64,000 nucleotides of DNA from Salpingoeca rosetta (GCA_033442325.1 JAWQFM010000029.1:338966-402965), one strand, 5' to 3'; shown: positions 645-63,366, numbered from the stretch's first letter. Notes: a model not told the origin generated them from the sequence alone. Numbers and translations are program-made.

Positions 645-1244
645 CAGACACACACACACACAGGCAGACAAAAGGCTGACCCATGGGTAGTAGGGGACGT
701 TGTAGCTTGGCCAGTAGCTGCGCTGCAGATCCATTGTCTTGTCCTCAAGCACATACGCACCAGGAATCTGATGCACACCAGAGATGCGGTGATGATGATG
801 ATGATGATGATGATGATGAGCCGAGGTGTAGGACGGCGAGGGAGGAACCCATGGCACACACACACACACACACACACGCACACACAACACGCACACGCAC
901 ACACACACGCACACACACACATATATACACACACATGCACACGCACACGCACACGCACACACACACACACCTGTTCGGAGACCCAGAAGATGCCGTGTGG
1001 GAGGGGCTGGCCCGGGACGAAGAGCTTGTAGTCGATTGTCATCCACTGGTTGTTGTACGTCCCGCTCTGGTACTGGTAGAAGCGCTCATGCCACTCCCGG
1101 CCCGTGTTGGTCATCCGCGTTGCAACAATCACGCGCACCCTGTTGTTGGCAGTGGTGATGGCGGCGGAAGCCATGTGAGTGCATTGGAGGAGGAGGAGGT
1201 GGTGGTGGTGGTGGTGGTGGTGGTTGATTCACACGGCAGCACAA

Positions 1245-1326
<82 letters not shown>

Positions 1327-2793
1327 CCACACACACACACACATACACACATACACACAACCACACACGCACACACACACACACACACACACATTATATG
1401 CTTACCAGTATGGAAGGGTGCTTGGGTTGACCATGTCATACAGGGTGTTGTTGAAGATGCCATTGGTTGTCTCCATAATCGCCATCTGAACAGAAGGCAG
1501 GGGGGAGGAGGAGGGTGCCATGAAGTGACGGGTGAGGATGAGGATGGCGGTGAGGTGTGGTTGTGACACTCGCAGGGGAATATACACCATGCAACAGCAA
1601 CGTATAGCGGTGCACACACACACACACATACACACACATACACACACACATACATACACACACACACACACACAAAACGCGGCACAACACAACCCACCCT
1701 CTCTGATGTGATGTAGTAGTCGTCGAGGGATTCCAGAAGGGCGGGGTAGCCCGAAAACATGACTGTACTCGTTTTGGTGCCTGCCGTGGTGGAATAGGGG
1801 AGATGGTACACCTGGTGGGCGCAAGATTGCAAGGGTGGTGTGAGGGCAGTGACAGAGTGACAGAGTGAGAAGGGGAAAGATACTGACACACACACGCACG
1901 CATGCACACACACACACATGCATACAACACACACACACATGCATATAACACACACACATGCATACAACACACACACACATGCATACAACACACACACACA
2001 CACACCAACACACACACATCACAACACAACACAACACATCACAACACAACACACACATCACAACACAACACACACTCACGCACACACACACACACACCAC
2101 AACACAAAATCATATGCATCCGTCACGAACCTTGAAGATGCGCAGCATTTGGGAGTAAGGGCACCAGGTGGTGTGTGTGAACATGAGATCGGATAAATCG
2201 TCCGTGACCTTCACCATGGCGCTGCAGTGCGTTGTGTCCGCCATAAAGTCCTTCAATTCCTGTTGTGTCATCGCCGTCACGTTGGGCCGCTTCCCCGGAT
2301 ACAACGCAAGCTCAATCGTCGGCAGATCAACCACTGCAGGGGCAAGAGGGGGGGAGGGGAGGGGAGAGTATAAGCGAGGGAGAGAAGGGAAATTGCGTGC
2401 ATGTGCATGTGTGCATGTGCATGTGTGTGTGTGTGTTGAAATCGTTCCGAAGCAAAGTGTATGAATAAATAGTCCGCTCAATCACACACACCACCACCAC
2501 CACCACCACATACAAAACACCATACACACACATCATGCACGTACGAAGGTTAAGGAGCAGCATGTCGGTGAAGGTGAGCTTCTTCTGCCCAGCTGCGTTG
2601 TAGCCTGCCACGAGCCCATTCAGCTGCTGATACACCAGCGCAACCTGGACAGGTACGATGACAAGCAGCAGATGGTTTGTGTGTGTATGAGTGTGTGAGT
2701 GTGTGTGTGTGAGTGAGAGTGGGAGAGAGAGAGTGTGTGTGTGTGTGTGTGCGTGTGTGTGTGTGTGTGAGAGAGTGGGAGAGAGAGAGAGAG

Positions 2794-2867
<74 letters not shown>

Positions 2868-3738
2868 GGAAAGGAAGCAGAGGCCGTTCGCATGCAAAAG
2901 CGAGTGATGTATATCATCAGCCCACTTTGAAAACATTCACACGCGTACAAACCTGTGTCCAGAACGGGTCCTGTGGGTTGTGCTTGATCTTGTCCATGGT
3001 CCAGTTGTAGTTCTGCTGCACAAAGGCCATGACCTGTCTCAAGCGATAGTGACACGCCACGTTGGGTGAGATACGAGCGACACTCGTTCTGCGCACTCAC
3101 ATAGGCAAACATGCATGTGCACACACGCACACGCACACGCACACACACACATGCACACACACACACACACACGCATGCACTACCTTTGGGTCATGCTCTG
3201 GCTCCAGGTTGAGGTACGTGTTGTAGATCATATCCGCTGTAACCAGACCTTCCACGTAGCCTGCAAAGTTGATGAATTCGGGGTAAGTTGAGTACGGAAC
3301 GAAGAAAGGTGTCACAAAGCACTCGGCCTCAGCAGCACCGCCAGCGATTAGCCAGCCAGACACATACACTCACTCACTCACTCACTCACTCACTCACTCA
3401 CTCACTCACTCACTCACTCACTCACCCACTCACTCACTCACGCGCGCACCGGCAGAGAAAGCGGCGAGGTTGTCGTTCTGGACGGAGGTGGATGGCTTTG
3501 TCTGGACGTGCAGCTTGGCAAACCCAGTCATGTTGTAGGCGGGAAGGTTGTGGCTCGCCAGTGCAGTCCACTCGCCACCGCTTGCAGACACGACGCGGCA
3601 GTCAAAGCCATCCTGTCCCTTGCGCGCACATGCCACCGCCGTCTTGGACGGAGACGCCGCCGCTTGGCCACTGCTGTAGCCAACCACAACAGCGAGCAGC
3701 AGCGCCACAGACAACACACAACAACGCACCAGCAGCAT
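1..3738 (-). CDS. Phospholipase B-like (PLBD/lama family) Ntn-hydrolase, secreted/lysosomal; 3' end lies beyond the window start
   Basis: GT-AG spliced exons approx. 3738-3450, 3260-3184, 3033-2953, 2644-2545, 2333-2131, 1811-1698, 1485-1406, 1139-971, 767-681, 473-334, 112-<1. Signal peptide [19 protein letters not shown]. Family motifs: AFSAGYVEG, HCSAMVK (Ntn nucleophile Cys), [65 protein letters not shown]. Confidence 0.93.
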
Positions 3739-21266: not shown

Positions 21267-21302
<36 letters not shown>

Positions 21303-22733
21303 ATGGGATGCAGAGGTGCTGAAACGTGCAACCATGGTTGCTTCACGTCACCCGCTTCACACATGACCGCATCTGCTCACCACCACCACCACCACCACCA
21401 GGCCGGGTGTTCCAGGCGCTGCAGGTGTACCGGCGGTCGCTGGCTGTGCACACGACGGCGCACGGCCACGCTGGTCTGGCCACTGTCTTCCATCGCACGC
21501 AGCAGCTGCGGGAGGCCGCCTTCCACTATGCCGAGGCCATCAAGCTCAACCCGCGCTTTGCAGAGTGCCACACCAACCTCGGACACGTCTACAGGTGTGG
21601 TGGCATGTGTGCGTGTGTGCGTGTGTGTGTGTGTGTGATGATCGTGTGTTTAAGGTGTGGGTCACGGCGCCGTTCTTCATCCTTTTTTTTTTTTTGCCCT
21701 GTCCTCAACCCTCACACGTTCCTCACCAATCATTCCCCACCAACCCTCGTCCGCCCCCCCCCCTCATACAGAGAGCTAGGGGACCTGAACCACGCGCGCC
21801 AGGCGTTTCTGAGCGCCGTCGCCGTCAATCCAAACTCCGCCGACGACTACAACAACCTCGCATGCGTCTGCAAGGATCTTGGTAAGTCGCGAGTATATGC
21901 AAGACAATGTGTGTGTGTGCGTGTGCGTGTGTGTTTGTGTGCGTGTGTGTGTGTGTGTGCTGCAGGTCCGCCCCCAACTCATCACATTCAACCACCACCA
22001 CCAATCATCTTCGCCACGTGCAGGCATCATTCACGAGGCAATTCGTTACTACAAGGCGTCGCTCAGCCTCAAATCCGACAACCCAACTGTCTTCTGCAAC
22101 CTCGCCCACTCGCTCCAAATGGTAGGCATGTGCGTCTGTGTGTCTGCGTGTCTGTGTGTCTGCGTTTGCTTTACTTGAACTTCCCTTTCTCTCTCTTTCT
22201 CTTTCTTTTCACCTCACCACCACATCACCCTCCCTCTCCCCCCCCCACCGCCATCTCCTCCTTCAACTCCAATGCAGGTGTGCGACTGGGGCGACTATGA
22301 GCACCGCATGCGCCAGCTCGTGTCCTTAATCAACCAGCAAATCACCAGCAACCTCTTCCCCTCGGTGCACCCGCACCACTCGTTCCTGTACCCGCTGCCT
22401 AACACGCTTCGTCGCTCCATTGCGCAAGCGCACGCCGACGCCGCGAAACGAAACGTGGCCATGCTCCAGCGGCCCCCATACTCCTTCAAGGACTACGTGC
22501 CCCTGAAAGGGCGGCTGCGTGTGGGCTTTGTGTCGTCGGACTTTAAAGACCACCCCACGTCGCACCTCATGCAGAGCGTGCCCGGATACCACGACAAGTC
22601 GCTGGTGGAGGTGTTCTGCTACTCGCTCGCCCCCGATGACGGCAGCGTGTACCGGCGCAAGATTGAGCGTGAGGTGGAGCACTTTGTCGACCTCAGCGTC
22701 ATCACAGACAACGGCCTCGCTGCAGGTGTGTGC

Positions 22734-22778
<45 letters not shown>

Positions 22779-23580
22779 TGTGTGTGTGGGTGAATGTGCG
22801 TGCGGATGTGTAGAGATGAAACGTTTGCTTGCCTGCACTGTTGCCTGTGAACTCCCCCCCCCCCTTGTTATCCTCTAATTCACCCTAATCCCGTGTGTTC
22901 TGCCGTCACCACTTCCTCCATCGCCACATCATCTCAACTTCATCTCCATTACCAGATCGCATCTACGCTGACCGCATCCACATCCTGATCAACCTCAACG
23001 GGTACACAAAGGGCGCGCGCACGGAGATTTTCGCCCTCCGCCCCGCCCCCATCCAGGCCATGTGGCTCGGTTATCCAGGCACTTCCGGCAGCGATTTCAT
23101 GGACTACATCATCACAGGTGCGAACTGTGTGTGTGTGTGACATTTGTGTTACGTTTGTGGTTCATGTGTGTGTGACACGTGTGCCACATGTGCGCCGCAT
23201 GTGCGTTTGTCTGTGCCTGCCCCCTTCCCCCCCCCTTCTGCACGTTACCCTTCCCCACAGCCTCCGCCTCTATTCTGCCCTCTCTCCCCTTCCTCACTCT
23301 GCATGTCCACCACCACCACCTTGGTCTCTGTCGTCGTCGTCGACTCAGACGCGCTGACAACGCCGCCTGAGCAGTGGCAGGACGCGTACTCGGAGCACCT
23401 CGTGTACATGCCGCACACGTTCTTTGTCGGCGACCACGCCAACATGTTCCCGCTGCCGCCAAACCACGACGTGCGCGACCCTGATGAGGAACGCCGTATC
23501 ACCTCTGCTGCCCTGCCGTACACGCAGGGGCTCTCCCAGGCAGACGCGCGCGCACACGCACAGCGCGTGAGCACCGCACT

Positions 23581-23619
<39 letters not shown>

Positions 23620-23885
23620 ACAGTTGGGTCATGTTGCGCAACCGCCCATTGATCAGTACCAGTCTGCGCAGACGGTGCATGGCAGCCACGTAGCTCACCA
23701 ACAGCAGCAGCAGATGGGCGATACAGTTACTGCCCCCATTTATGCGTCCACACTGGCACAGGTCCTCGCATCGAATCCGTTCAACATTCCATACGTCGGG
23801 GTGAGTACATGCGTGCTTTGTGTGTGTGGGTGTGTGTGGGTGGGTGGGTCTGTGGGTCTGTGGGTCTGTGGGTCTGTGTGGGTGC

Positions 23886-23951
<66 letters not shown>

Positions 23952-24309
23952 TTCGCGCGTGACGCTCCCTTGCTCCTCAAGAGTTGACCCACTCACACGC
24001 TCACACGCTCACTCACCATCGTCACCATCGTCACCCTCCCACCAAAGACCAACTATGTCATCCCCGGGGCGGCGCATGCGTTCCCGAGCGCGTACATCCC
24101 GAGTCTCCAGTATGTGTTGCCGCAGGGGCAGGTGCCTGCGCACCCCGTCATGCCCGCGTCTGCGTCACAGGCCAGGCTAAACGCGTTTATCATGCCCATG
24201 CAACACCTGATTGGGCACATGCAACAGCAACAACAACACCATCAACAACAGTCTGTGCTACAATCCCTGCAACAAGCAGCACCACAGCACCCCGCGTACC
24301 TGCCCATGC

Positions 24310-24350
<41 letters not shown>

Positions 24351-25075
24351 CCCGAACAGGTACGCGAATGATGGTGTTGCGTGTTATATGTGTGTATGTG
24401 CACGTTGTGTGGCGGTTTGGGCTGGCATTTGCGTCTGGTACTGACTCTCACACATGTTCTGCCGTATTTATATTCACATATCTGCCCCCCCCCACGACAC
24501 ACACCCACACACACCAATGCTTGGTTCCCTTCAGGCGGACCGCGATCTGACGCGGCTGCTGAACATGACACTGGACACAACCAAGGCGGCGGCGCAGGCG
24601 TCAGCAGCAGCAACAGCCGCGCAATCATCGGCAGAGCAAGCAGCCTCCACCTCCACCACCGCCCTCACATCATTATCAACATCTGCACCAGCATCGTCGA
24701 CATCATCGTCGTCGGTTATGGCGCGTGGTGCGCGTTCATCGCGTGGTCGCCGTGCAATGGCGCCGACAGCGGCAGCGGCGGCGGCAGTGAAGAAGAGGGA
24801 ATCGCCAACACGCGATGCGCTGGAGAGCATCGAGCGACCAGCCAACAAGAAGGCAGCATGCAGCCTCCAGAGCGACGACGATGATGGTGATGGCGATGGT
24901 AACTGTGGGGATGATGCGATTGTGCGGCGCGCTGCTGGTCTTGGCGTTGGTGTTGGCGCTGGTAAGGGCTCCACAAGTAACGGCGTGACTGGCAATGGTA
25001 CTCGCTCCAGCACTGAGGGCGTGCGTGGCCAGATTGGCACTGGCACGAACACAGCCTCCACGGCAGCCCACACGC

Positions 25076-25151
<76 letters not shown>

Positions 25152-25418
25152 GCTGCTGCTGCATCAGCAATATCATCAGCAGCATGCACCGCAACAGGCC
25201 GTCGTGTCACTTGAGGAGCAGCCGCACCACCCACGCTACGCTCACCCAATGCCCTCGCAGCCCTCGCACTCGCAAGCGGTCATGATGGGGTACGCCGCAC
25301 CCGCGCCAGCCATCGTCCACATGAAGCCAATCCCGGTACGTAACAGGAGGGCGGGGAGTGATTTGGGTGAAGTAACGGAGAGTGTGTCAGCGAGACGTGT
25401 GTGGGGGGGGGCAGAGAT

Positions 25419-25458
<40 letters not shown>

Positions 25459-25664
25459 ACTTCGGACACTCATGCTCACGTCGCGTCACTCTGGGCCGTT
25501 CCATGTTCTGTGTGATAGAAAACGCCATCGCATGCGCCCCTCCCGCCACCGGATCAGCCGAATCAGCCGCCACTCACGCGAGCGTATTACGGTCTTCCCC
25601 AAGACAAGATCATCCTCTGTAACTTCAACCAGGTACGTGCATGTGTGTGTTGTGTGTTGTGGGT

Positions 25665-25719
<55 letters not shown>

Positions 25720-27420
25720 TCAACATTGCATCGCTCCCACCTGATCTCTCCTTCTCTCTCACGCTCATTGTCTCGCATTTCTGCCATCACCTCATCCCTT
25801 CAACACCTGCCTCACCACCCACAACCCGCCAACCCGTGCCGTGTGACACAGCTGTACAAGATCGACCCGATGACGTTCTCGCTGTGGCTGGACATTCTCA
25901 AGGCGACGACCAACACAGTGCTGTGGATTCTTCGCTTCCCGCCTGCTGGCGAACAGAACCTGCGCATGCACGTGCAAGCCGCTGGCCTCGACCAGTCACG
26001 CGTCATCTTCAGCCCCGTCGCCGGCAAGGTGGGTTGTGTGTGTGTGTGTGTGTTTGCTTTGTTTGGATTATGTTCTGTTGATGTCTTGCACTCGGAAACG
26101 TGTGCACATGTGTGTGTGTGTCACGTGTGTCACGTGCATCACGATCGCTTTGTTGCGCTGTCTGTCTGCATTTGTTCCCACCGCCTTTGACTCACTTTGC
26201 TGCATCCGCCCCTCTCACCTCAGGTTGAGCACGTGCGTCGCGGTGCGCTGGCGGACCTGTGCCTGGACACGCACGCGTGCAATGGCCACACAACGGGCAT
26301 GGACATTCTGTGGGCCGGCACGCCCATGCTGACGCTGCCAGGTGACACGCTTGCATCACGCGTTGCGTCGTCGCTGGTCACCGCGCTCGGGTGCCCTGAA
26401 CTGATTGCGTCATCCCGCCAAGACTACTTCAACAAGGTCTGTGCACGTGTGTGTGCGTGTGTGCGTGTGTCTGTGTGTCTGTGAGTGTGCTGAATGTTGG
26501 GGGCACTTTGTGTCGCTTCTTGAATCGTTTCCTTGATTGTGATCATCGTCATGACGGCGCGCACTACCCCTCACGGCTCCTCAAACCCCCCCCCTCCCCC
26601 AACTGCTACTGCTCTTACCGCAGGCCGTTGATTTGTGCCGAAACCCACGCAAGCTCCTCGACATGCAGCACAAGGTGGGAAGCACCAACCACTCGCCACG
26701 GCATGCTGCTCAACTGCGCTCGCAGTACTTCCACGCGTCCACGCACACACACACACACACACTGACACTGTCTCACCAACTCACTCACTCACTCTCTCTC
26801 ACACTCACACACACTGACACTGTCTCACCAACTCACTCACTCACTCTCTCTCACACTCACACACACACACACACATCTCTCCTCTCCTCTCATCTCCCCT
26901 CGCGAACCACCAGGTCCGCCATGCGCGCACACGTGCGCCGCTGTTTGACACGCGGCTGCTGACGCGGCATTTGGAGCGGTCCTATTTCGCAATGTGGAAC
27001 AACTACGAGAAGCAGGGCACGCCCACGCACCTGTGCATCGAGCCCGTGGCAGAGTGCACCGTCCCGTGCTCCAGCCGCCCGGACACGCGCGCCCCCACAG
27101 TGGCAACGCCGCTGACATACCCGTCGCTGACCAAGACGATTGTCGGTGTCCCGCAAACCACTTCCGCGCCGCAGCCACAGCACCACCACCATCTCCACCA
27201 CCCACAGGCGGTCGTGCCATCAGCCGTGTCAGCCGTCCCGTCACTCCCGCCACCGCCACATGCACACGCGCACGCGCACGCGGGGATTGCAGCTGCACCG
27301 GCTGCCGCACACATGTCCATGATACCCATGCAGGCGCTGGTGCAATCGCAGCAACATCAGCAGCTTCAGCAACACCACCACCAACAGCAACAGCAGCAGC
27401 AACATCAGCAGCTTCAGCAA

Positions 27421-27452
<32 letters not shown>

Positions 27453-27810
27453 GATGATGGCGGCGGCCAACGCACAACAAGGCCACGTCACATTCCCCGC
27501 TGCCATGCACAGCCAACAGGCGCACCAGGCCCACATGCAGCACCAACAGATGCAAGCGCACCAACAGCAGCAGGCAGCCATGCACATGCAGGTGCCACAG
27601 CAGCAGCAATTAGGCACGCCGATGCAAGCACACCACCGCAGCCAACCGCAGCAGGTTCAGTACCACCAACTCGTTCAACCACAACAACAACAGCAGCAGC
27701 AGCAGCAGCAACACGCACACGCACACCAGCAACAACATGTGCAGCAACAGCCCTTGTCGATGCACTTTCCAGCCCTCTCAGCCATGGGCCACGTGAGCAT
27801 GGGCAGATGA
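20508..27810 (+). CDS. OGT: UDP-GlcNAc:peptide O-GlcNAc transferase (GT41, animal/SEC type) with shortened TPR array and polyQ insertions
   Basis: TPRs [10 protein letters not shown]..., WNNLGCV..., [13 protein letters not shown]. Catalytic region [85 protein letters not shown]|[34 protein letters not shown]. Start uncertain (nearest ATG 20508; first clear coding sequence from 20746). Confidence 0.96.
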
Positions 27811-29557: not shown

Positions 29558-32500
29558 ATGAGTGAACAACAGCAGCAGAACCAGGAACAGATACCTGAAT
29601 GGTGTGAAGGCCTGATCGAGGCAATCATGGACGGCTCCTGTGAAGGGACACTGACGTAAGTGTGCAGATTTGTGTGTGTATCTGTGTACTGTGTCTGTGT
29701 GTGCGTCTGTGTGTCTGTGTGTGTGTGTGTCTGTGTGTCTGTGTGTGTCTGTGTGTCTGTGTGTGTCTGTGTGTATCTGTGTCTGTGTCTGTGTGTCTGT
29801 GTGCGTGTTTGTGTCTGATCTCTGTGTGTGCGTCTGTGCTACTGTCAGTGAATGTGAGAATCGAGATCAACGTGATGCGTGTGGCCTCATGGATTGATGT
29901 TGTTGATAGGCTGGCAGGGGAATATTTAGACCCGATTTCAGTGTCTGCGCAGATGCTGGCCAGAATTCTTGAGGCGATTGCCTCCAGCAATGCTAGCATC
30001 GTGAAGCTCGTGTGAGTACAGTGAACAAGCAGTACCTCCACAGACATGAGAATTGTGCGTTGGGTTTGGAGCGAGCTACCTCCTCACAAACGATGCGCTG
30101 TTTGTCTCCTCACTGTTGACTGCTAAGTGTGGTGGAAGCACTCCTTCCATGGAAAGCCTTGCTTCCACTCGCATATTCGCTCGAGACGTGGACGTGCTTG
30201 TGCACACGCAGGTACGTGAATCGGGTGGTCCTGGGATCAAACTCTTAGGCCATTGCTGTCAACGTTATCGCGCTACTGTCCTGATGTGATTCACACGCAC
30301 ACCAACTGCACATTGCTGCGCTGCATAACATGTGACCATGCTGTGATATCCTTGTGAGAATGTAACACATGTGTATGAACTCAGCTGTGTTATTCACTGC
30401 ATTTGCTTTGCCCATTTGCTTCCTGCTCCAGTGCAATGGCAACGCTCTTTGGGTGCAACCTTTCCAATGAGCGCATGCACACTGTAGTCAGTGGCCTGCA
30501 AAACCTGATGGGCCTGCGCACCCTCGAGTAGGAACTGCAGTGTGTGGAATGTCGACTTATTATTTGTGTTGCAGGCGGTGTTGCTCGAGGTTGAAAAATG
30601 TCTTCGCCAGCAGATCTGGGGAGACGAAGTTGTGTGCAAAGTGGCCCTTGCGTTGTTACTCCAAGCCCTGTGATGCGCTCACCAACTCTCGGATCTGTGT
30701 TCTTCTTGCCTGAATTGGCATGCACTACCAGTATTCTTCGCATGTCACTTGACCGGACAGAGATGCATGTTTTTTTGTCGACCCTTTCGAAGCTAACAGG
30801 CTTACGATCCCTTTCGTACGTGTTGTCATGAGTGTTGGTTGAAAGTGGCTGTTTGCTCACTCATTTTAATGTGTGTGGTTGGCACGTACACCGTGACTGC
30901 TGGTTTTGGTCCGTTGCCGTGGGTGTTATCTTCTGCATGGGTTGTGCTGTGCGGCTGGCATTGGTCATGAATTCTCACGAACTTTGAATGCGATTGTGTC
31001 TTGATCCACACAGTCTCTTTGCGATCAGCCTGCCACAAAAAGCCGAGAGCAAGCCGAAAACTTGGCAGGAGCTGCTGCAGATGAGGTTTTGTCCGCCGAT
31101 GCTTCATCGGGAATCGTGCTGTGTGCTGACAATTTGATATGGATGGACTATTTGATTGCACGCACGGATGAGGGTGTGGTACATGCATACCAAACTTGGG
31201 GCATCATGCAGTCGAGTCACAGTTCTGTCTAACATGCGCTTGATCTTTCGTGCACTGTGTTGCACTGTGCCTGCTGGACACGCAGCTGTTTCTCCGGGTT
31301 TTTGCCCAAGACACCGGGACCCGGGAGCATGCGCGCACTTGCAGAAGCACTTGCCAAGTTGACGAACCTTCAACAACTCAAGTAAGTGAGCTGAACAAAT
31401 GTTTGATCCGGTTATACGACTGCCAGCTAGCTTTTGCGACGTGCGCGCACGACAGACGACAGGCACAGACACACACGCATAAACAGCGACCGAGAGTGTG
31501 TGTGCGTGTGAGGGCGTGATAGGATTTCCTGTTAAAACACTTGTGACTGGCGGCTTTTGACATTACGAAGATTTGTTTTCTCTGGCATTGAACCTGTTTC
31601 TCAAGACTTGCATTGCATTGTGGTTGTGCTTACTTTGGCTGCGTGTTGCATGTGCAGACTGAACGGCAACAATTTCGGACCTGAGGGCATGGGCGCACTC
31701 GCAGCAGCACTTGCCAAGTTGTCCAACCTTCAACAACTCAAGTTTGTATGGGTGTGTTTGCGTGCGCGTGTGACTTGTGGAGCAGGCCCTACACAGTGGC
31801 GCTTTTGTGAGCGTGCTCAATGTTTGTGGGCTGTTTCGCTGCGTGTCGTGGAAGTTGAGCATGTACATCATGCCACTGACATCAGATGATCGTTGCACTG
31901 CACTTGACCGGTTTGTCATGTATCTTTGCAACTCCCCCCCCCCCAAAAAAATATTAGCTTGTCAACGAACGAGCTTGGGTGCGACGGCATGGGCGCCCTC
32001 GCAACAGCACTTGGCAACTTGACAAGCCTGCAACAACTCAAGTTTGTATACGTGTGTGTGCGCGCGCGTGTGTGTGTGGGTGTGCTGTACGGCCGATTCG
32101 TTGAATTGGTGTGGTGATGGATATGTTCATCGTTTTGCAGCCTGTGTGAGTGCATGTCAGGGTGGCTGAGCGTGTTTTTCATGCCGCTCGCTTTTACCTG
32201 ATGTATTTGTTGTGCGAGGTTGTGACCTCATTCACATCACCACTCTGCGTGATGATTGCACTGTCCTTTTTTTTTTCTTCTTTTTTCCCCTGCGCACTCC
32301 CAACTAGCTTGTCATCGAACGAGCTTGGGTGCGACGGCATGCACGCCCTCGCAACAGCACTTGGCAACTTGACAAGCCTGCAACAACTCGAGTTAGTTAG
32401 TGTGGATTTTATGGGAGACAGACTCGTTGAAGTGGTGTTGTGCTTGAGGTGTCCATGGCTTGCGGTATATTGTAGGAATAGTTGCGCACGTGCATCATTA

Positions 32501-32735
32501 TGGTACAGGGTTGTAGCCGTCGTCACGTGTCGACTCACCAGTGAGTGACGTTTTACGATTGGTGCACTTGCTTTTGCTTTTCTTGTGTGTTGACTGCGGG
32601 CGTGATGTGCAGTCTGAGCAGCAACAACGTTGGACCTGAGGGCATGGGCGCCCTCACAACAGCACTTGCCAAGTTGTCCAACCTTCAACAACTCAAGTTT
32701 GTATGCGTGTGTTTGCGTGTGTGTGTGTGCGTGTG

Positions 32736-32793
<58 letters not shown>

Positions 32794-35700
32794 CGTGTGT
32801 GTGTGTGTGTGTGTGTGTGAAGCACGTGCACGGTGACACTGGGCCCGTAGCCATGGATCATTGTGTGTTACTCACGTTTGACCCCTGATTTATTTTGTGA
32901 TTCCTGATGAACCCTTTTACATCTCGTGCCCATTAGTATCAACAGGAACAGCCTTGGCTCTACGGGCATGCACGCGCTTGCAAGGAGCGTTGAAAACCTG
33001 GCAGCTCTGCGTTATCTCAGGTTTGTGTTTGTTCGTTGTGCTCATTTGTTAACCGATATTGTTGACACGCTGCTATGCACTCCCGACGCGTTTCTCACAT
33101 GTATGCTGACGGCCACTGCAGCGTTACAAACAACAGCATCACGCACCTGACACCTGAGTATCTCAAGACTGTTCACATTCGTGTCGTTGATGTGAACGAA
33201 AACCCCATCCTGTGCCCTCCCGGCTCGGTTCTTACCCCAGAAGAAAGCTTCTGGTATGACGATCTCGATGAGGGGCCCTGGGACAACCGTCAGGGAATAT
33301 TTCCGTATCTACGCGACGTGGAAAAGGGGCACGAGCTTCTCACACGATCTCGCCTCGTGTTTATTGGGGATGGCGGTGTCGGCAAGACCACCCTCAAGGC
33401 GGCGCTGATGATGCTGCACAACGCCGATCGCGAAACGTTGCTGGAGGGCATTCGTACGTCCTTACGCACCGAGTTGAGAAGGTACACAGAGGCCGACTTC
33501 CGCCAGTGGGTGGATCACGATCTGGCGCACAGGGACGGGTTCTTTGACGAGGAGTGCCCGAGGGCCAAGGGTATAACGGGGAAGCGATGGTTGGCATGCA
33601 CCGATGACCAACTGCAGCAGTGGTTTGGCAGTGCAAACACGCCTGCCTCTGAGGACGTTGTGCAGCGCATGCTTCAGGCAAAGCGCTTTCTCCTCAGCAA
33701 AGGTAGCAAATTGTCTTCGTCCAAAGACAGCGGCAGCCCGTTCCAGCAGCTCTTGCACATGCCGCACGTGTGGACGGAAGGCATTGACGTGGACCACTGG
33801 ATCAAGCACGCGTTTGACTTGTGGGATTTTGCGGGCCAGCTGGAGTTCTTCCCGGCCCACCAGCTCTTCATGGCCTCGCACATGGCCGTGTACCTCCTTG
33901 TGTTTGATGCCTCAAAAGGGTTGGAGCATTCCATCGCCCGTATCAGTGTGTGGCTCGGCCTGCTGCAAGCATGCCGCCTGTCTCGACACAAGCAAGCCGA
34001 AGCCGTGCAAGTGCGGCTGGTCGCCACCAAGACAGACTTGCCATCCTTTGATTTTGATCTCCAGCACCTCCACGCTGTTGTGCAAGAGCGGGTTGGAAGC
34101 GAGTTTCATCTTGGACACTGCTGTTTTGCCCCACGCTACGATGAACACGACATTGGTGATGCAGGCGCCGACTTCGGCCTTGTTGCCTTGGATGAAGAAC
34201 TCGCGACACTGCGAAGGGAAGGTGTGCCCTACGTCCAAGTCCCTACCGCCTATTTGAGCATCAAGAACTGTGTGCAGAGCATGAAAATGGAGCAGCACCA
34301 GGTGTGGCCCATCATTAGTGTGTCCGAGATCGACTTCCGAGACAAGGACCCCGACCTCATTTTGAGGTTCTTGGACGATGCGGGTGTGGTGCGGCGCATT
34401 CCCGATGACGAGGACCGGTGTGTGCTGGAGCCGGTGACCTGGCTAAGCAAGCTGATGGCGGCGCTGCTGCACCCGCTGCACGGCTTGAGGCTGACGACTG
34501 CGCAGGCGGGCACAGCAAGCACAGCGGTCTTCGTGCCTGGCGTATCTGTACTACAAGCCGTGAACGCGCTGGAAAAACGAAGCATTCGCATCCCACAGTA
34601 CGCGCAGGACGATTTGCTGCCATTCCTCGCTTCCTTTGACGTGTGCTTTGCACTGGGTGACGGACGCTTCACGTTTCCCGCCCTCCTTCCTCGCCAAGAT
34701 CCTCACCCGACCATCAGAGCCAGGATGAACGAGCTGCTTGGCAGTGAGCCGGGCGTCATCTTTGGACGGCGCCTGCAGTGCACAAAGTCGGACGACTGGC
34801 TGCCGCCCACGTGCTGGTCAGCGATTGTGAGGCGGCTGTTTCCGATTGTGAACGCCATTCGAGGCGTGCCTATCCACCTCAGCTTGGGCATGTTTGTGGC
34901 CCAAATCAACGACACCAATTGCCTGGCGGTGTGCACGGATGATCACGAGTTTTCCCACTGTCTGGATGTGATTGCAGTTGGCGGTAACGCTGCGGTCCTT
35001 GATCTCGCCATGTTCTTTGTCATCAATGGCCTCAAGCGGTTGATGACTTTGTCCACGCTGGAGAAGCGCTGTTTGGTCACAGCTGCCGCAACAGATCCTC
35101 TGGCAGTCACCCAACCCTTGCTCCAGCGCGGCATGCGTACGTTTCCCGCACCCACGACGGTGCGCCCTGGTGCGATCTTACCTCCTCCTCCTCCTGCTGA
35201 AACTGACCTGGTTGGGGTATATTATCACTATCTGCTGCAACATCAATTCCAGTATATTGGGAGCATAGGCCAGCTACTTCACCAACAAGAGCTTCAAGAT
35301 GCGTTTTGTATGACGACAGATCCCCGCATCGTGGAAGAACGACTGCCAACGACCTCCGCACCGCAACCCACGTGGCCTTGTGGTGCGCAACATGTCCTCG
35401 ATGGCATACGGGTTTCGTCGTTGCAATTTATGGGTGGGCTCTTTGGCAAGCACGTGTACGAAGGCAGCATGTCTGATGCTGAAGGCACGGCAGGTGGCAC
35501 ACATGCGCCCTCTCATGCGACAGCTTCCAACACTCAGGTGGCTGTGTGGGCAATTATGCAACCAAGCAGTGCACTGCAGCTACCTGCAAGTGGCACGGTA
35601 CTGCCTGATGCCCTCCTTCGCTACCAGGGCGTTCAGCACGACAGCAGCCTCAACATTTCCTTCCTGCCAGCGCGCGTGCCATGTCACTCGCGCCCGTTGT

Positions 35701-37070
35701 CGCCGGATATCTTGTCCTCCCTTGATCACGCGGCGCTGCGCTCTCTCATCCGTGGCATCACTCACGGACTGCACTTCCTGCACTCGCGTCAGCTCACGCA
35801 CGGCAGCCTATGCGCACATCACGTGCTGTGCTGTCCGCAGGAGGTTGGGGCGAGCGTACCCAGCAGCAGCGTGTACCGTGCAAAGCTGGCTGCATACGGG
35901 CTGGGTGTTGGGTGCATGGATTGTGGTCAGGAGTGGCTGGCACCAGAGCAGCGTGCTGTTGCCCCACATCACCGCCAAAGGTCAAAGTCAGCAGACATGT
36001 TTGCGTTTGGCCAGGTGATTGCATTCATCCGCATGCGTGGCAATGTCAGCAACACCACCACCCCCACCAGCAGCAGCAGCGACAGTACCACCAGTACCAC
36101 CACCAGCGCCATGGCTGGCGTTGTCAACGAGGGTGCAGAGGCGGCGTTTCAGGAAGCGGCCAAGTACGCCGTTGTGCGGCTTACACGCAAGGCACCAGCA
36201 CAACGCGTGAGCGCGGATGATTACCTCCGCACAGCAGAAGGCGGCGGCGTCTTCCTGTTCCAGGACCATGACCCGAGCGACGTGGCGGCGCGCTGCTTGT
36301 TGCCTGCGCTGCAGTTGAGCCAGGTGCGAGTGAAGAAACAGCAGTGCACAAGTGATGAGTGGCAGCAGCTAAGCGCCGACAAGAGGAACGCCATCGGCAA
36401 GTTCCTCAGCCAGTGGACGGGTGGGTATTGGTTGGCGCACACTGGTGTCGGTGGAGGACATGACAACGTCACTGACAAATGGAAGGCTGTGCTACGCCAA
36501 GGAATGCCAGCGCTGATGCATGCCATGGAACACAGTGGCGGCGACTGCAGCAGCAGCAGCACCTGTGGCGATGCGTGTGACTACAGTGATGACGTGCAAG
36601 GGCTGTTTCAATGCATGTACGACCTCGTGTACGATACCCAACCATGGTGCTCTGTGGAAGTGCTGCGTCAAGCTGGCTTGCTGGATGAGACCACTCAGGC
36701 ACTGTGCAAGGCGACACTGTATCGCCAGCTGAACCACATGCTCCCGTCTGTGTTTTTGTGTTTGCACAACTTCCGACGAGCGTCAACGGCGCCCTTCAAG
36801 GCCGCACAGGCTCTGAGCCTGCACTTTGGACACGGTGGTGGCAACGCCAGCGAGAAGCAAAAGAAGCCCGCCACCATGGCGGCAACTGCGCAAGGCGAGT
36901 TGCAGGCGCTGCACCTTGACGATGATGCAATGGAGCTTTCGGCGCCAGACACGGAAGTGTCTAGTTCAACCATCAAAGCAAATCAGAAGAACAAGGCTGC
37001 GTTGAAGTCGGTGCAGCGGTGGTTAGCTGAGGATCAGATGGAAGACGATGACGCCGACGCAGATTGCTGA
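29558..37070 (+). CDS. Roco protein: RNI-like LRRs - Roc GTPase (SAM-like insertion) - COR - pseudokinase - degenerate KEN/RNase-like domain
   Basis: Phase-2 exons 29558-29655, 29910-30011, 30128-30211, 30432-30527, 30732-30815, (31014-31085), 31286-31381, 31658-31741, 31958-32041, 32308-32391, 32613-32696, 32937-33020, then one exon 33122-37070. Roc motifs: [48 protein letters not shown] motifs: VPTAY, LEPVTWL, FPALL. Kinase-like motifs: [36 protein letters not shown]. Confidence 0.9.
31658..32696 (+). repeat. Tandemly duplicated 84-nt LRR exon modules (A-B-B-A arrangement)
   Basis: 31658-31741 and 32613-32696 ([23 protein letters not shown]) are near-identical and share downstream intron starts gtttgtatg(g/c)gtgtgtttgcgtg. 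31958-32041 and 32308-32391 ([24 protein letters not shown]) are near-identical. Confidence 0.9.
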
Positions 37071-49300: not shown

Positions 49301-51737
<2,437 letters not shown>

Positions 51738-52945
51738 TAAGTCCACAACTGTGGAGTGACCACCAGAGCGGTGGTGCGGGTGGGAGTCTTGTGCTTCTTC
51801 TTGTCTGCTTGTTGTGTTTGTTGTCAAAGGGAAAATGCTTCGGCAAGCGCAAGGCGGTGCACAAAACAACAATCAGCCAAGAAGAAGCAAGGCAATCGCA
51901 CACCTTGTTGCCGTGCGTGCTTGCGTGGCAGACGCACACGATGTAGAAAAGGTGTCTGAGTTGTTACATTACGCGCGCTTGCACCACATTGCCGGATGCT
52001 TCTCACTTGATTGCGTCGGTGGTCAGGTCACGCACTTTCAGAGCAATTTGCGCCTTCCTGAAGTCCTGAAGTCAGAGTACGCACCACACAAGAATCGCGA
52101 ATCCCACAACAATTGCATGGTGACATGGGAAGACACTTGCGGGACGCGTGTGTGACATGCGCCCGATGCAAGGCAAGCCACTCTTCTATTTTTATCTAGA
52201 GGCAGCTGAATAGCAGAAGTTGCTCTCGTGCAAAGGAATCGTCTGGCAAGTGGACTGCTGGACGTGTGCGTGTCACGATCCTTCGCACACATCGCACGCT
52301 CCATCTCACATCACACACCACCGACTTGCTCGTTTGTGGGCCACTTCAATAGGGACGGTGTTTGCCAGCAAGACAGGGGCTTGAGGAATTGAGGACGCTT
52401 CTTGTGTTGTCTTGTTGTATCCGTTGTGGTTGTGGTTGCGTTCCTTCATCGCCGTTAGCCTCGGCGTTAGCCTCGCGGTGCTCACGCAAGGTGCGCTGTG
52501 AGGAAGAGCATCACACACCAACGCGCACTTCAGAGTGGAAGTGCAGCCTTGGTTGACGACTGATTTCAGTCTAACCAGAAATCCAAACAGCCACTAAAAC
52601 CGCATCAAATCACATTGCAGAATAACATGGCTGTTTATTTTTTGGCTGGTTCGTTTTTTTGGATCGCCTGTGTGTCTTGGTCGGCGAACAACAAACAACG
52701 ACCAAACAACAACAACAACCGCACACCACCTGCAGGCTCACACCTCATTGTGCTGCCTGCCTCACCACCACCACCACCACCGCTCCGTCTCCGCATTTCT
52801 CTTCCTCCTCCTCCTCGTTTCGTTGCAGATGCACGGTGCTGCAACGGTGTTGGAACGAGAATAGCAGCACCGCAGCAGGAACTGCAGGGACACAAGCAGG
52901 AGCTTTTTGTGGCAGCTCGGCACTTGACACAACACAAGCTCCACG

Positions 52946-63366
<10,421 letters not shown>

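Follow-up and report, generated by a model that had tools for sequence, protein, structure and literature searches.

A Roco protein of Salpingoeca rosetta with a pseudokinase and a probable degenerate KEN domain

Introduction

RNase L, which is restricted to jawed vertebrates, is built in the order of repeat sensor, pseudokinase scaffold and KEN domain, and KEN nucleases require a kinase-templated dimer. In IRE1, a kinase is likewise followed directly by KEN. RNase L arose by the addition of a sensor to an existing kinase-RNase unit, and the role of its kinase domain has been described (PMC10400998). The listed KEN fusions involve kinase, ankyrin, CCCH, UBI and BRCT, with no Roc-COR among them (PMC3710099). 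Leucine-rich repeats (LRRs) and Roc-COR followed by a kinase fold are found in Roco proteins such as LRRK1/2, Dictyostelium Roco and the brown-algal LRR-ROCO proteins. Roco proteins act as nucleotide-regulated dimers (PMC4104024), and those of brown algae have been proposed as immune receptors (PMC11378527). The present analysis concerns a gene in a stretch of 64,000 nucleotides from the choanoflagellate Salpingoeca rosetta (GCA_033442325.1 JAWQFM010000029.1:338966-402965; G000:C29:338966-402965 in a genome of 55.4 Mb and 68 contigs), the whole of which is referred to as the window. The product of this gene is very probably an LRR-Roc-COR receptor with an IRE1/RNase L-type kinase-KEN output module that is dead in both halves. 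The kinase-plus-tail module has two further copies in the genome, on contigs C4 and C2 (the latter XP_004997100.1), and the three genes (C29, C4, C2) are unlinked.

The window protein shares with RNase L the order of repeat sensor, pseudokinase scaffold and (probable) KEN, but its sensor is made of LRRs and a Roc-COR GTPase, the ankyrin/2-5A sensor of RNase L was not found, and the catalytic residues are gone. The succession of kinase and KEN recalls IRE1, whereas the luminal/transmembrane part that distinguishes IRE1 is missing, LRR-Roc-COR stands in front, the kinase is dead, and kinase and KEN lie in one intronless exon as against many introns in the IRE1-like gene of the same genome. What sets it apart from other Roco proteins is the dead kinase and, behind it, a KEN-like domain in the position of WD40 or other tails. 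The window protein belongs to the Roco proteins and is neither IRE1 nor RNase L. No Roco-KEN fusion was found in the literature searched (subscription texts and figure contents lay outside reach), and a preliminary description of the locus, made from its sequence, knew of no such architecture among Roco proteins.

Gene structure and transcription

Roc, COR, pseudokinase and helical tail are encoded by a single exon of 1,316 codons (33122-37070, + strand) within an open frame of 1,331 codons (33075-37070, +), the exon start having been set to 33122 by RNA. All motifs quoted in the preliminary description lie in this one frame. The LRRs, which it had placed in the same open reading frame, are instead located on separate upstream exons, while the proposed order of LRR, Roc, COR, pseudokinase and KEN-like domain is otherwise supported. 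RNA reads and contigs show both ends of the last LRR exon (84 nt, 32937-33020, +) to be spliced. Upstream it is joined to an earlier LRR exon, seen as a loose end in the RNA; downstream a GT-AG intron of 101 nt in phase 2 (33021-33121, +) connects it to the Roc exon with the frame kept (8 reads with 5 starts in run X17, and contigs in X1 and X2; frame checked), which places the N-terminal repeat domain and Roc in the same transcript. Further upstream, an AG/84/GT scan with per-exon translation delineated an approximate array of one-repeat LRR exons, mostly of 84 nt and in phase 2 (29859-32696, +), with examples at 30732-30815, 31658-31741, 31958-32041, 32308-32391 and 32613-32696. The array is preceded by a probable first coding exon for an N-terminal cap (29558-29656, +; ATG at 29558), recognised in sequence by its resemblance to the N-terminus of the paralogue PTSG_06810. 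Phase-2 exons of one repeat each also occur in brown-algal LRR-ROCO genes, where they measure 72 nt instead of 84 nt (PMC11378527). Exons of the window gene and of the IRE1-like gene were handled singly in translation and comparison.

The exon is covered in sense direction by stranded reads of two RNA runs, and a contig of 2.5 kb, from runs only guessed to be RNA, extends from COR-B to the tail with zero differences from the window. Expression evidence was pieced together, no single molecule spanning the whole exon. Since none of the 19 detectable C4 sites in the kinase-KEN region appeared, the reads belong, at low depth, to the window gene; their derivation from the C4 twin was rejected accordingly. 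An assembly chimera was also rejected, given the contig from COR-B to the tail and the presence of the fusion at two other loci. The window gene and C2 are expressed in the same RNA runs. In the shared Roc region, C2-specific alleles account for ~83-100% of reads at most diagnostic sites, and C2 therefore provides most of the transcript, exceeding the window gene some four- to eight-fold in run X17.

Roc, COR and pseudokinase domains

The Roc GTPase (33330-34229, +) matches PF08477 at E 8.4e-10 (39.4 bits against a Pfam cut-off of 27) and retains G1 (33366), G2 (33771), G3 (33822) and G4 (34020). Between its P-loop and switch I lies an insertion of ~130 amino acids (33400-33770), common to the whole clade, the core of which has no Pfam match. 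A COR domain likely follows directly (34230-35354, +; boundaries approximate): the Pfam COR-A model aligned over its full length, though weakly (E 0.1), and the paralogues are annotated as COR-domain proteins.

The kinase region (35400-36299, +) matches the Pfam model Pkinase at E 7e-5 as an isolated region and up to E 1e-3 otherwise, below the Pfam cut-off, and its neighbours in the ESM Atlas, a language-model search, are pseudokinase-helical proteins. Its motifs lie in one frame, namely VYEG (in 35433-35465), VAVW (35538-35549), HGSLCAHH (35799-35822), AYG (in 35886-35900), WLAPE (35934-35948), DMFAFG (35994-36011) and RVSA (36204). As had been read from the sequence earlier, the catalytic motifs are degraded: the beta3 lysine, the catalytic-loop Asp, Lys and Asn and the DFG aspartate are all replaced, and because of these losses the domain is a pseudokinase by established criteria. 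In a ranking of PDB sequences for the window kinase, the TYK2 pseudokinase and DAPK lead with non-significant scores and IRE1 stands far down, also when a profile is used; for the C-lobe of C2, IRE1 is the third kinase family, at a non-significant E of 0.13. No LRRK or tyrosine kinase-like (TKL) kinases occur among the top 60 PDB matches. Over subdomains VIII-IX, good scores are obtained with both IRE1 exons, yet TKL-like kinases, preselected for similarity, score higher. These comparisons do not establish the IRE1/RNase L grouping of the kinase suggested in the preliminary description, and on sequence grounds the IRE1 affinity of the kinase is weak.

The KEN-like tail and its catalytic motif

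The KEN-like helical domain, of the HEPN clan (36300-36782, +), begins directly after kinase subdomain XI and contains TDKWKAVL (36471-36494), YSDDV (36582), YDLVYD (36618-36635) and a segment LYRQ..LH (36717-36767). The domain has no Pfam or PDB match of its own and does not reach the curated cut-off of PF06479; PDB sequence searches with the KEN segment alone also gave no matches. It can nevertheless be aligned end to end with the corresponding segment of C2 (27% identity, E 3e-13, BLASTP). The top Pfam match of this C2 segment, among 24,736 models, is Ribonuc_2-5A (PF06479; E 3.7e-4, model positions 31-111). The window tail is hence homologous to a KEN-matching sequence placed right after a kinase fold, and its likeness to KEN exceeds chance because of the C2 paralogue alone, its own segment being without matches. 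In the ESM Atlas, the C2 tail finds HEPN-clan clusters (0.90, at low recognition; a lead only), and for the window module a cluster of chordate kinase+Ribonuc_2-5A proteins ranks fifth (0.96), alongside other pseudokinase-helical proteins, with STKLD1/ULK4-type kinase-helical proteins on top.

The register of Tyr and R-N-x3-H is identical in C2 and in the IRE1-like gene of the genome. The latter carries WLAPE, and its KEN exons, although divergent, have YSTDV and RNKVEH in register with YSDDV and YDLVYD of the window, at RNase L-type spacing. The Tyr-to-Arg spacing and the R-N-x3-H of C2 are those of RNase L as well. Similarity to single exons of the IRE1-like gene had p 0.04 for C2 when the search was restricted and 0.18-0.24 in the other cases, with the register correct; direct descent from IRE1 is not established statistically by this comparison. 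Two GWLAPE kinase segments ~2.9 kb apart were observed in the IRE1-like gene (G000:C21, ~613-618.6 kb; L052/L053). A search of the genome with PF06479 returned no candidates and was uninformative, as its controls were silent too. AlphaFold2 predictions from 3 sequences are all-helical with low confidence for both C2 kinase-KEN and window KEN (predicted local distance difference test, pLDDT, 38.6 and 33.4); structure prediction failed for lack of homologues, and the fold searches therefore say nothing. Although the tail falls short of the strict KEN tests (profile cut-off and catalytic motif), a degenerate KEN is its most likely identity by sequence. The KEN-like module of the preliminary description stands through homology via C2, and not through any profile or structural match of the window itself.

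In place of R-N-x3-H, the window has Y-D-L-V-Y-D (R to Y at 36618, N to D at 36621, H to D at 36633), which bears out the loss of the nuclease motif noticed earlier. C4 has H-D-L-V-Y-D and likewise lacks Rx4H, while C2 retains it as R-N-V-C-H-H; a paralogue with intact RNxxxH had been predicted. KEN domains cannot do without the Rx4-6H motif (PMC3710099), so the window and C4 copies are predicted to be dead and C2 to be possibly active. The motif loss is older than the split between window and C4, which is recent (dS ~0.05 in the kinase-KEN module). The exon ends in a low-complexity tail of ~95 amino acids and the stop codon (36783-37070, +), covered by RNA and without a Pfam match.

Paralogues and mosaic evolution

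Over the module, the C4 twin and the window gene are 95% identical; their LRR exons form different sets. C2 shares 47% identity with the window gene in the kinase and 29% in the tail. The 5' end of the C2 gene falls in an assembly gap, and at its C-terminus C2 carries an extra, apparently beta-rich region of ~230 amino acids (L006:8476-9165, G000:C2) that is absent from both dead copies and has no Pfam match. Three more loci, one on C15 and two on C18, belong to this Roc-COR clade and carry a different short domain at the C-terminus; in the assembly, frameshifts affect the two C18 copies. By eye this domain is helical and death-fold-like, and it has no Pfam match (L013:3400-3849; L014, L015). 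The unplaced contig C52 (L026, 4,457 bases) is 99.9% identical to the window over Roc and has the same LRR exons in another order; it is either a fourth copy or an alternative allele. Outside this genome, searches that were word- and length-limited, so that a blank is no proof of absence, found no relatives in 1.84 billion representatives (generic kinases only), in 5.8 billion proteins or in metagenome, viral and prokaryote contigs.

Identity among the copies is mosaic. Between window and C2, the C-terminal part of Roc is 99% identical (dS 0.10), COR-A 91% and COR-B 40%, and dS reaches ~2 (saturated) in COR-B, kinase and KEN, a difference from Roc with p 5e-25. Between window and C4, the C-terminal part of Roc and COR-A are 98-99% identical, COR-B 68% and kinase-KEN 94-95%. 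This mosaic points to an exchange of segments between the genes (conversion or recombination) over an old divergence of the effector module. The ratio of non-synonymous to synonymous change (dN/dS) is ~0.5 between window and C4 in kinase and KEN (combined p 0.055, simple counting method) and ~0.3 between the pseudokinases of window and C2. Such values suggest that the kinase-KEN region of the dead copies may be under constraint.

Possible roles of the inactive copy

The window protein may serve as a non-catalytic partner of the armed C2 paralogue, a role that is favoured, tentatively, because the two are co-expressed and share a Roc surface while differing in their LRRs. In a mechanism derived from Roco and KEN biology, ligand at the LRRs would shift the Roc-COR dimer cycle, and this shift would make the pseudokinase scaffolds pair and the two-fold KEN active site close. 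The closed site of C2 would cut RNA, as a ligand- and GTP-gated RNase, whereas the window copy, unable to cut, would damp or gate the RNase in mixed dimers with C2. The frame is intact over more than 1,270 codons in both dead copies, with no stop or frameshift. Suppression of an active paralogue by a weak one has been reported for IRE1beta and IRE1alpha (bioRxiv 10.1101/586305). The parallel with the present genes is that one paralogue, weak or dead, accompanies an active one; it is a functional analogy only, and the S. rosetta genes are unlinked. Integrated decoys and sensor/helper pairs of plant nucleotide-binding LRR receptors offer the same analogy.

Several observations weigh against a partner role. 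COR-B is the main dimer surface in a bacterial Roc-COR structure (PMC4104024), and the low identity to C2 of COR-B (40%) and KEN (29%) argues against tight heterodimers. Further, the dead gene contributes the minor transcript, a ratio that would suit an inhibitor poorly. Purifying selection is non-significant for the dead KEN taken by itself (p 0.22), and gene conversion, which occurs commonly in this genome, may be without adaptive value. A more far-reaching proposal, which is doubtful, is that an RNase L-like defence receptor evolved independently in S. rosetta from a Roco chassis (C2), and that the disarmed copies, bearing other LRRs and a homogenised GTPase, serve that GTP-gated RNase as sensor or brake subunits.

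Simple decay, absent from the readings of the preliminary description, is a serious rival and nearly as likely as the partner role, though itself rather unlikely. The gene would descend by duplication from an armed Roco-kinase-KEN gene, its effector, a costly RNase, having been inactivated and now drifting, and it would persist as LRR-Roc-COR or as a supplier of LRR and Roc sequence. For each catalytic change a single non-synonymous base substitution suffices (CGC>CAC>TAC, AAT>GAC, CAT>GAT), KEN is the most diverged folded part (29% against 47% for the kinase), low-complexity insertions occur in kinase and KEN alike, the related C18 copies are frameshifted, and dN/dS between window and C4 is not significantly below 1 (p 0.055-0.22). 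Against mere decay stand the unbroken frames of both dead copies, splicing and transcription of the dead gene, the hydrophobic core positions that are kept, and a dN/dS point estimate of 0.5. The identity of the tail itself could also be questioned, if it were another helical domain after an ordinary, TKL-type Roco pseudokinase and the C2 motif match had arisen by chance. The score of C2 against PF06479 (21.1 bits) is below the cut-off of 23.3, the segment also matches an unrelated helical domain of unknown function at E 0.004, the low-pLDDT models gave no meaningful match in Foldseek and VIA searches and hence no structural confirmation of a KEN fold, and the lack of any direct Pfam or PDB match of the window tail, the leading STKLD1/ULK4-type neighbours and the exon-wise p of 0.04-0.24 would also fit such a domain. 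This explanation is nevertheless quite improbable, as PF06479 heads all models at the expected post-kinase position with a match that includes R-N-x3-H, HEPN-clan neighbours were obtained by a separate method, and LRRK/TKL kinases are absent from the leading PDB matches.

The integrated decoy put forward in the preliminary description would use the dead kinase-KEN as bait for pathogen inhibitors directed at IRE1 or the armed paralogue, and would thereby trigger the Roco switch. An immune-like context, with one-LRR-per-exon cassettes as in the brown-algal ROCOs (PMC11378527), the exchanged C-termini within the Roc-COR clade and the death of both enzyme halves would suit it. A decoy should, however, stay near its model, whereas this KEN shares just 29% identity with C2 and has no significant similarity to the IRE1 exons of the genome; there is also no sign of positive selection and no other output domain. 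We know of no pathogen inhibitor of the kind required. The decoy is judged improbable because the domain is close to neither candidate target, and no evidence in its support was found. Least probable of all is a non-catalytic output of the dead KEN, such as binding of RNA or protein, independent of C2. RNA binding has been proposed for non-catalytic HEPN domains (PMC3710099), and the divergence of COR-B would insulate the window protein from C2; yet acidic residues stand in place of the basic R/H pocket, which is unfavourable for RNA binding.

If the tail is KEN, this family would represent a second, independent joining of a repeat sensor to the IRE1 kinase-RNase unit, the route taken by RNase L, but with an LRRK2-type GTPase as the gate and in the unicellular lineage closest to animals. 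S. rosetta can be grown in culture and edited, and the family would offer there a Roco protein with a directly assayable output (RNA cleavage by the C2 copy) together with a natural dead control (the window gene). It would then be testable whether RNA-cleaving immunity exists in choanoflagellates and how the nucleotide state of Roc-COR drives an effector. The chief interest of the window copy is as the dead one of the C29/C4/C2 trio.

Neighbouring genes and other observations

The upstream neighbour (~21300-27810, +) contains tetratricopeptide repeats and looks like an ordinary O-GlcNAc transferase with a Gln-rich tail. Elsewhere in the window are phospholipase B exons (1086-3172, -), a RhoGAP (58500-60287) and a region of 36% GC (49600-52000), in which overlapping open frames on both strands (49622-50852) suggest a tandem repeat. 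In the genome at large, dozens of long open frames (1,000-1,900 amino acids), many of them on C27 and C25, match only the first half of the tyrosine/TKL kinase model and a short later piece, and form an expanded family of atypical kinases.

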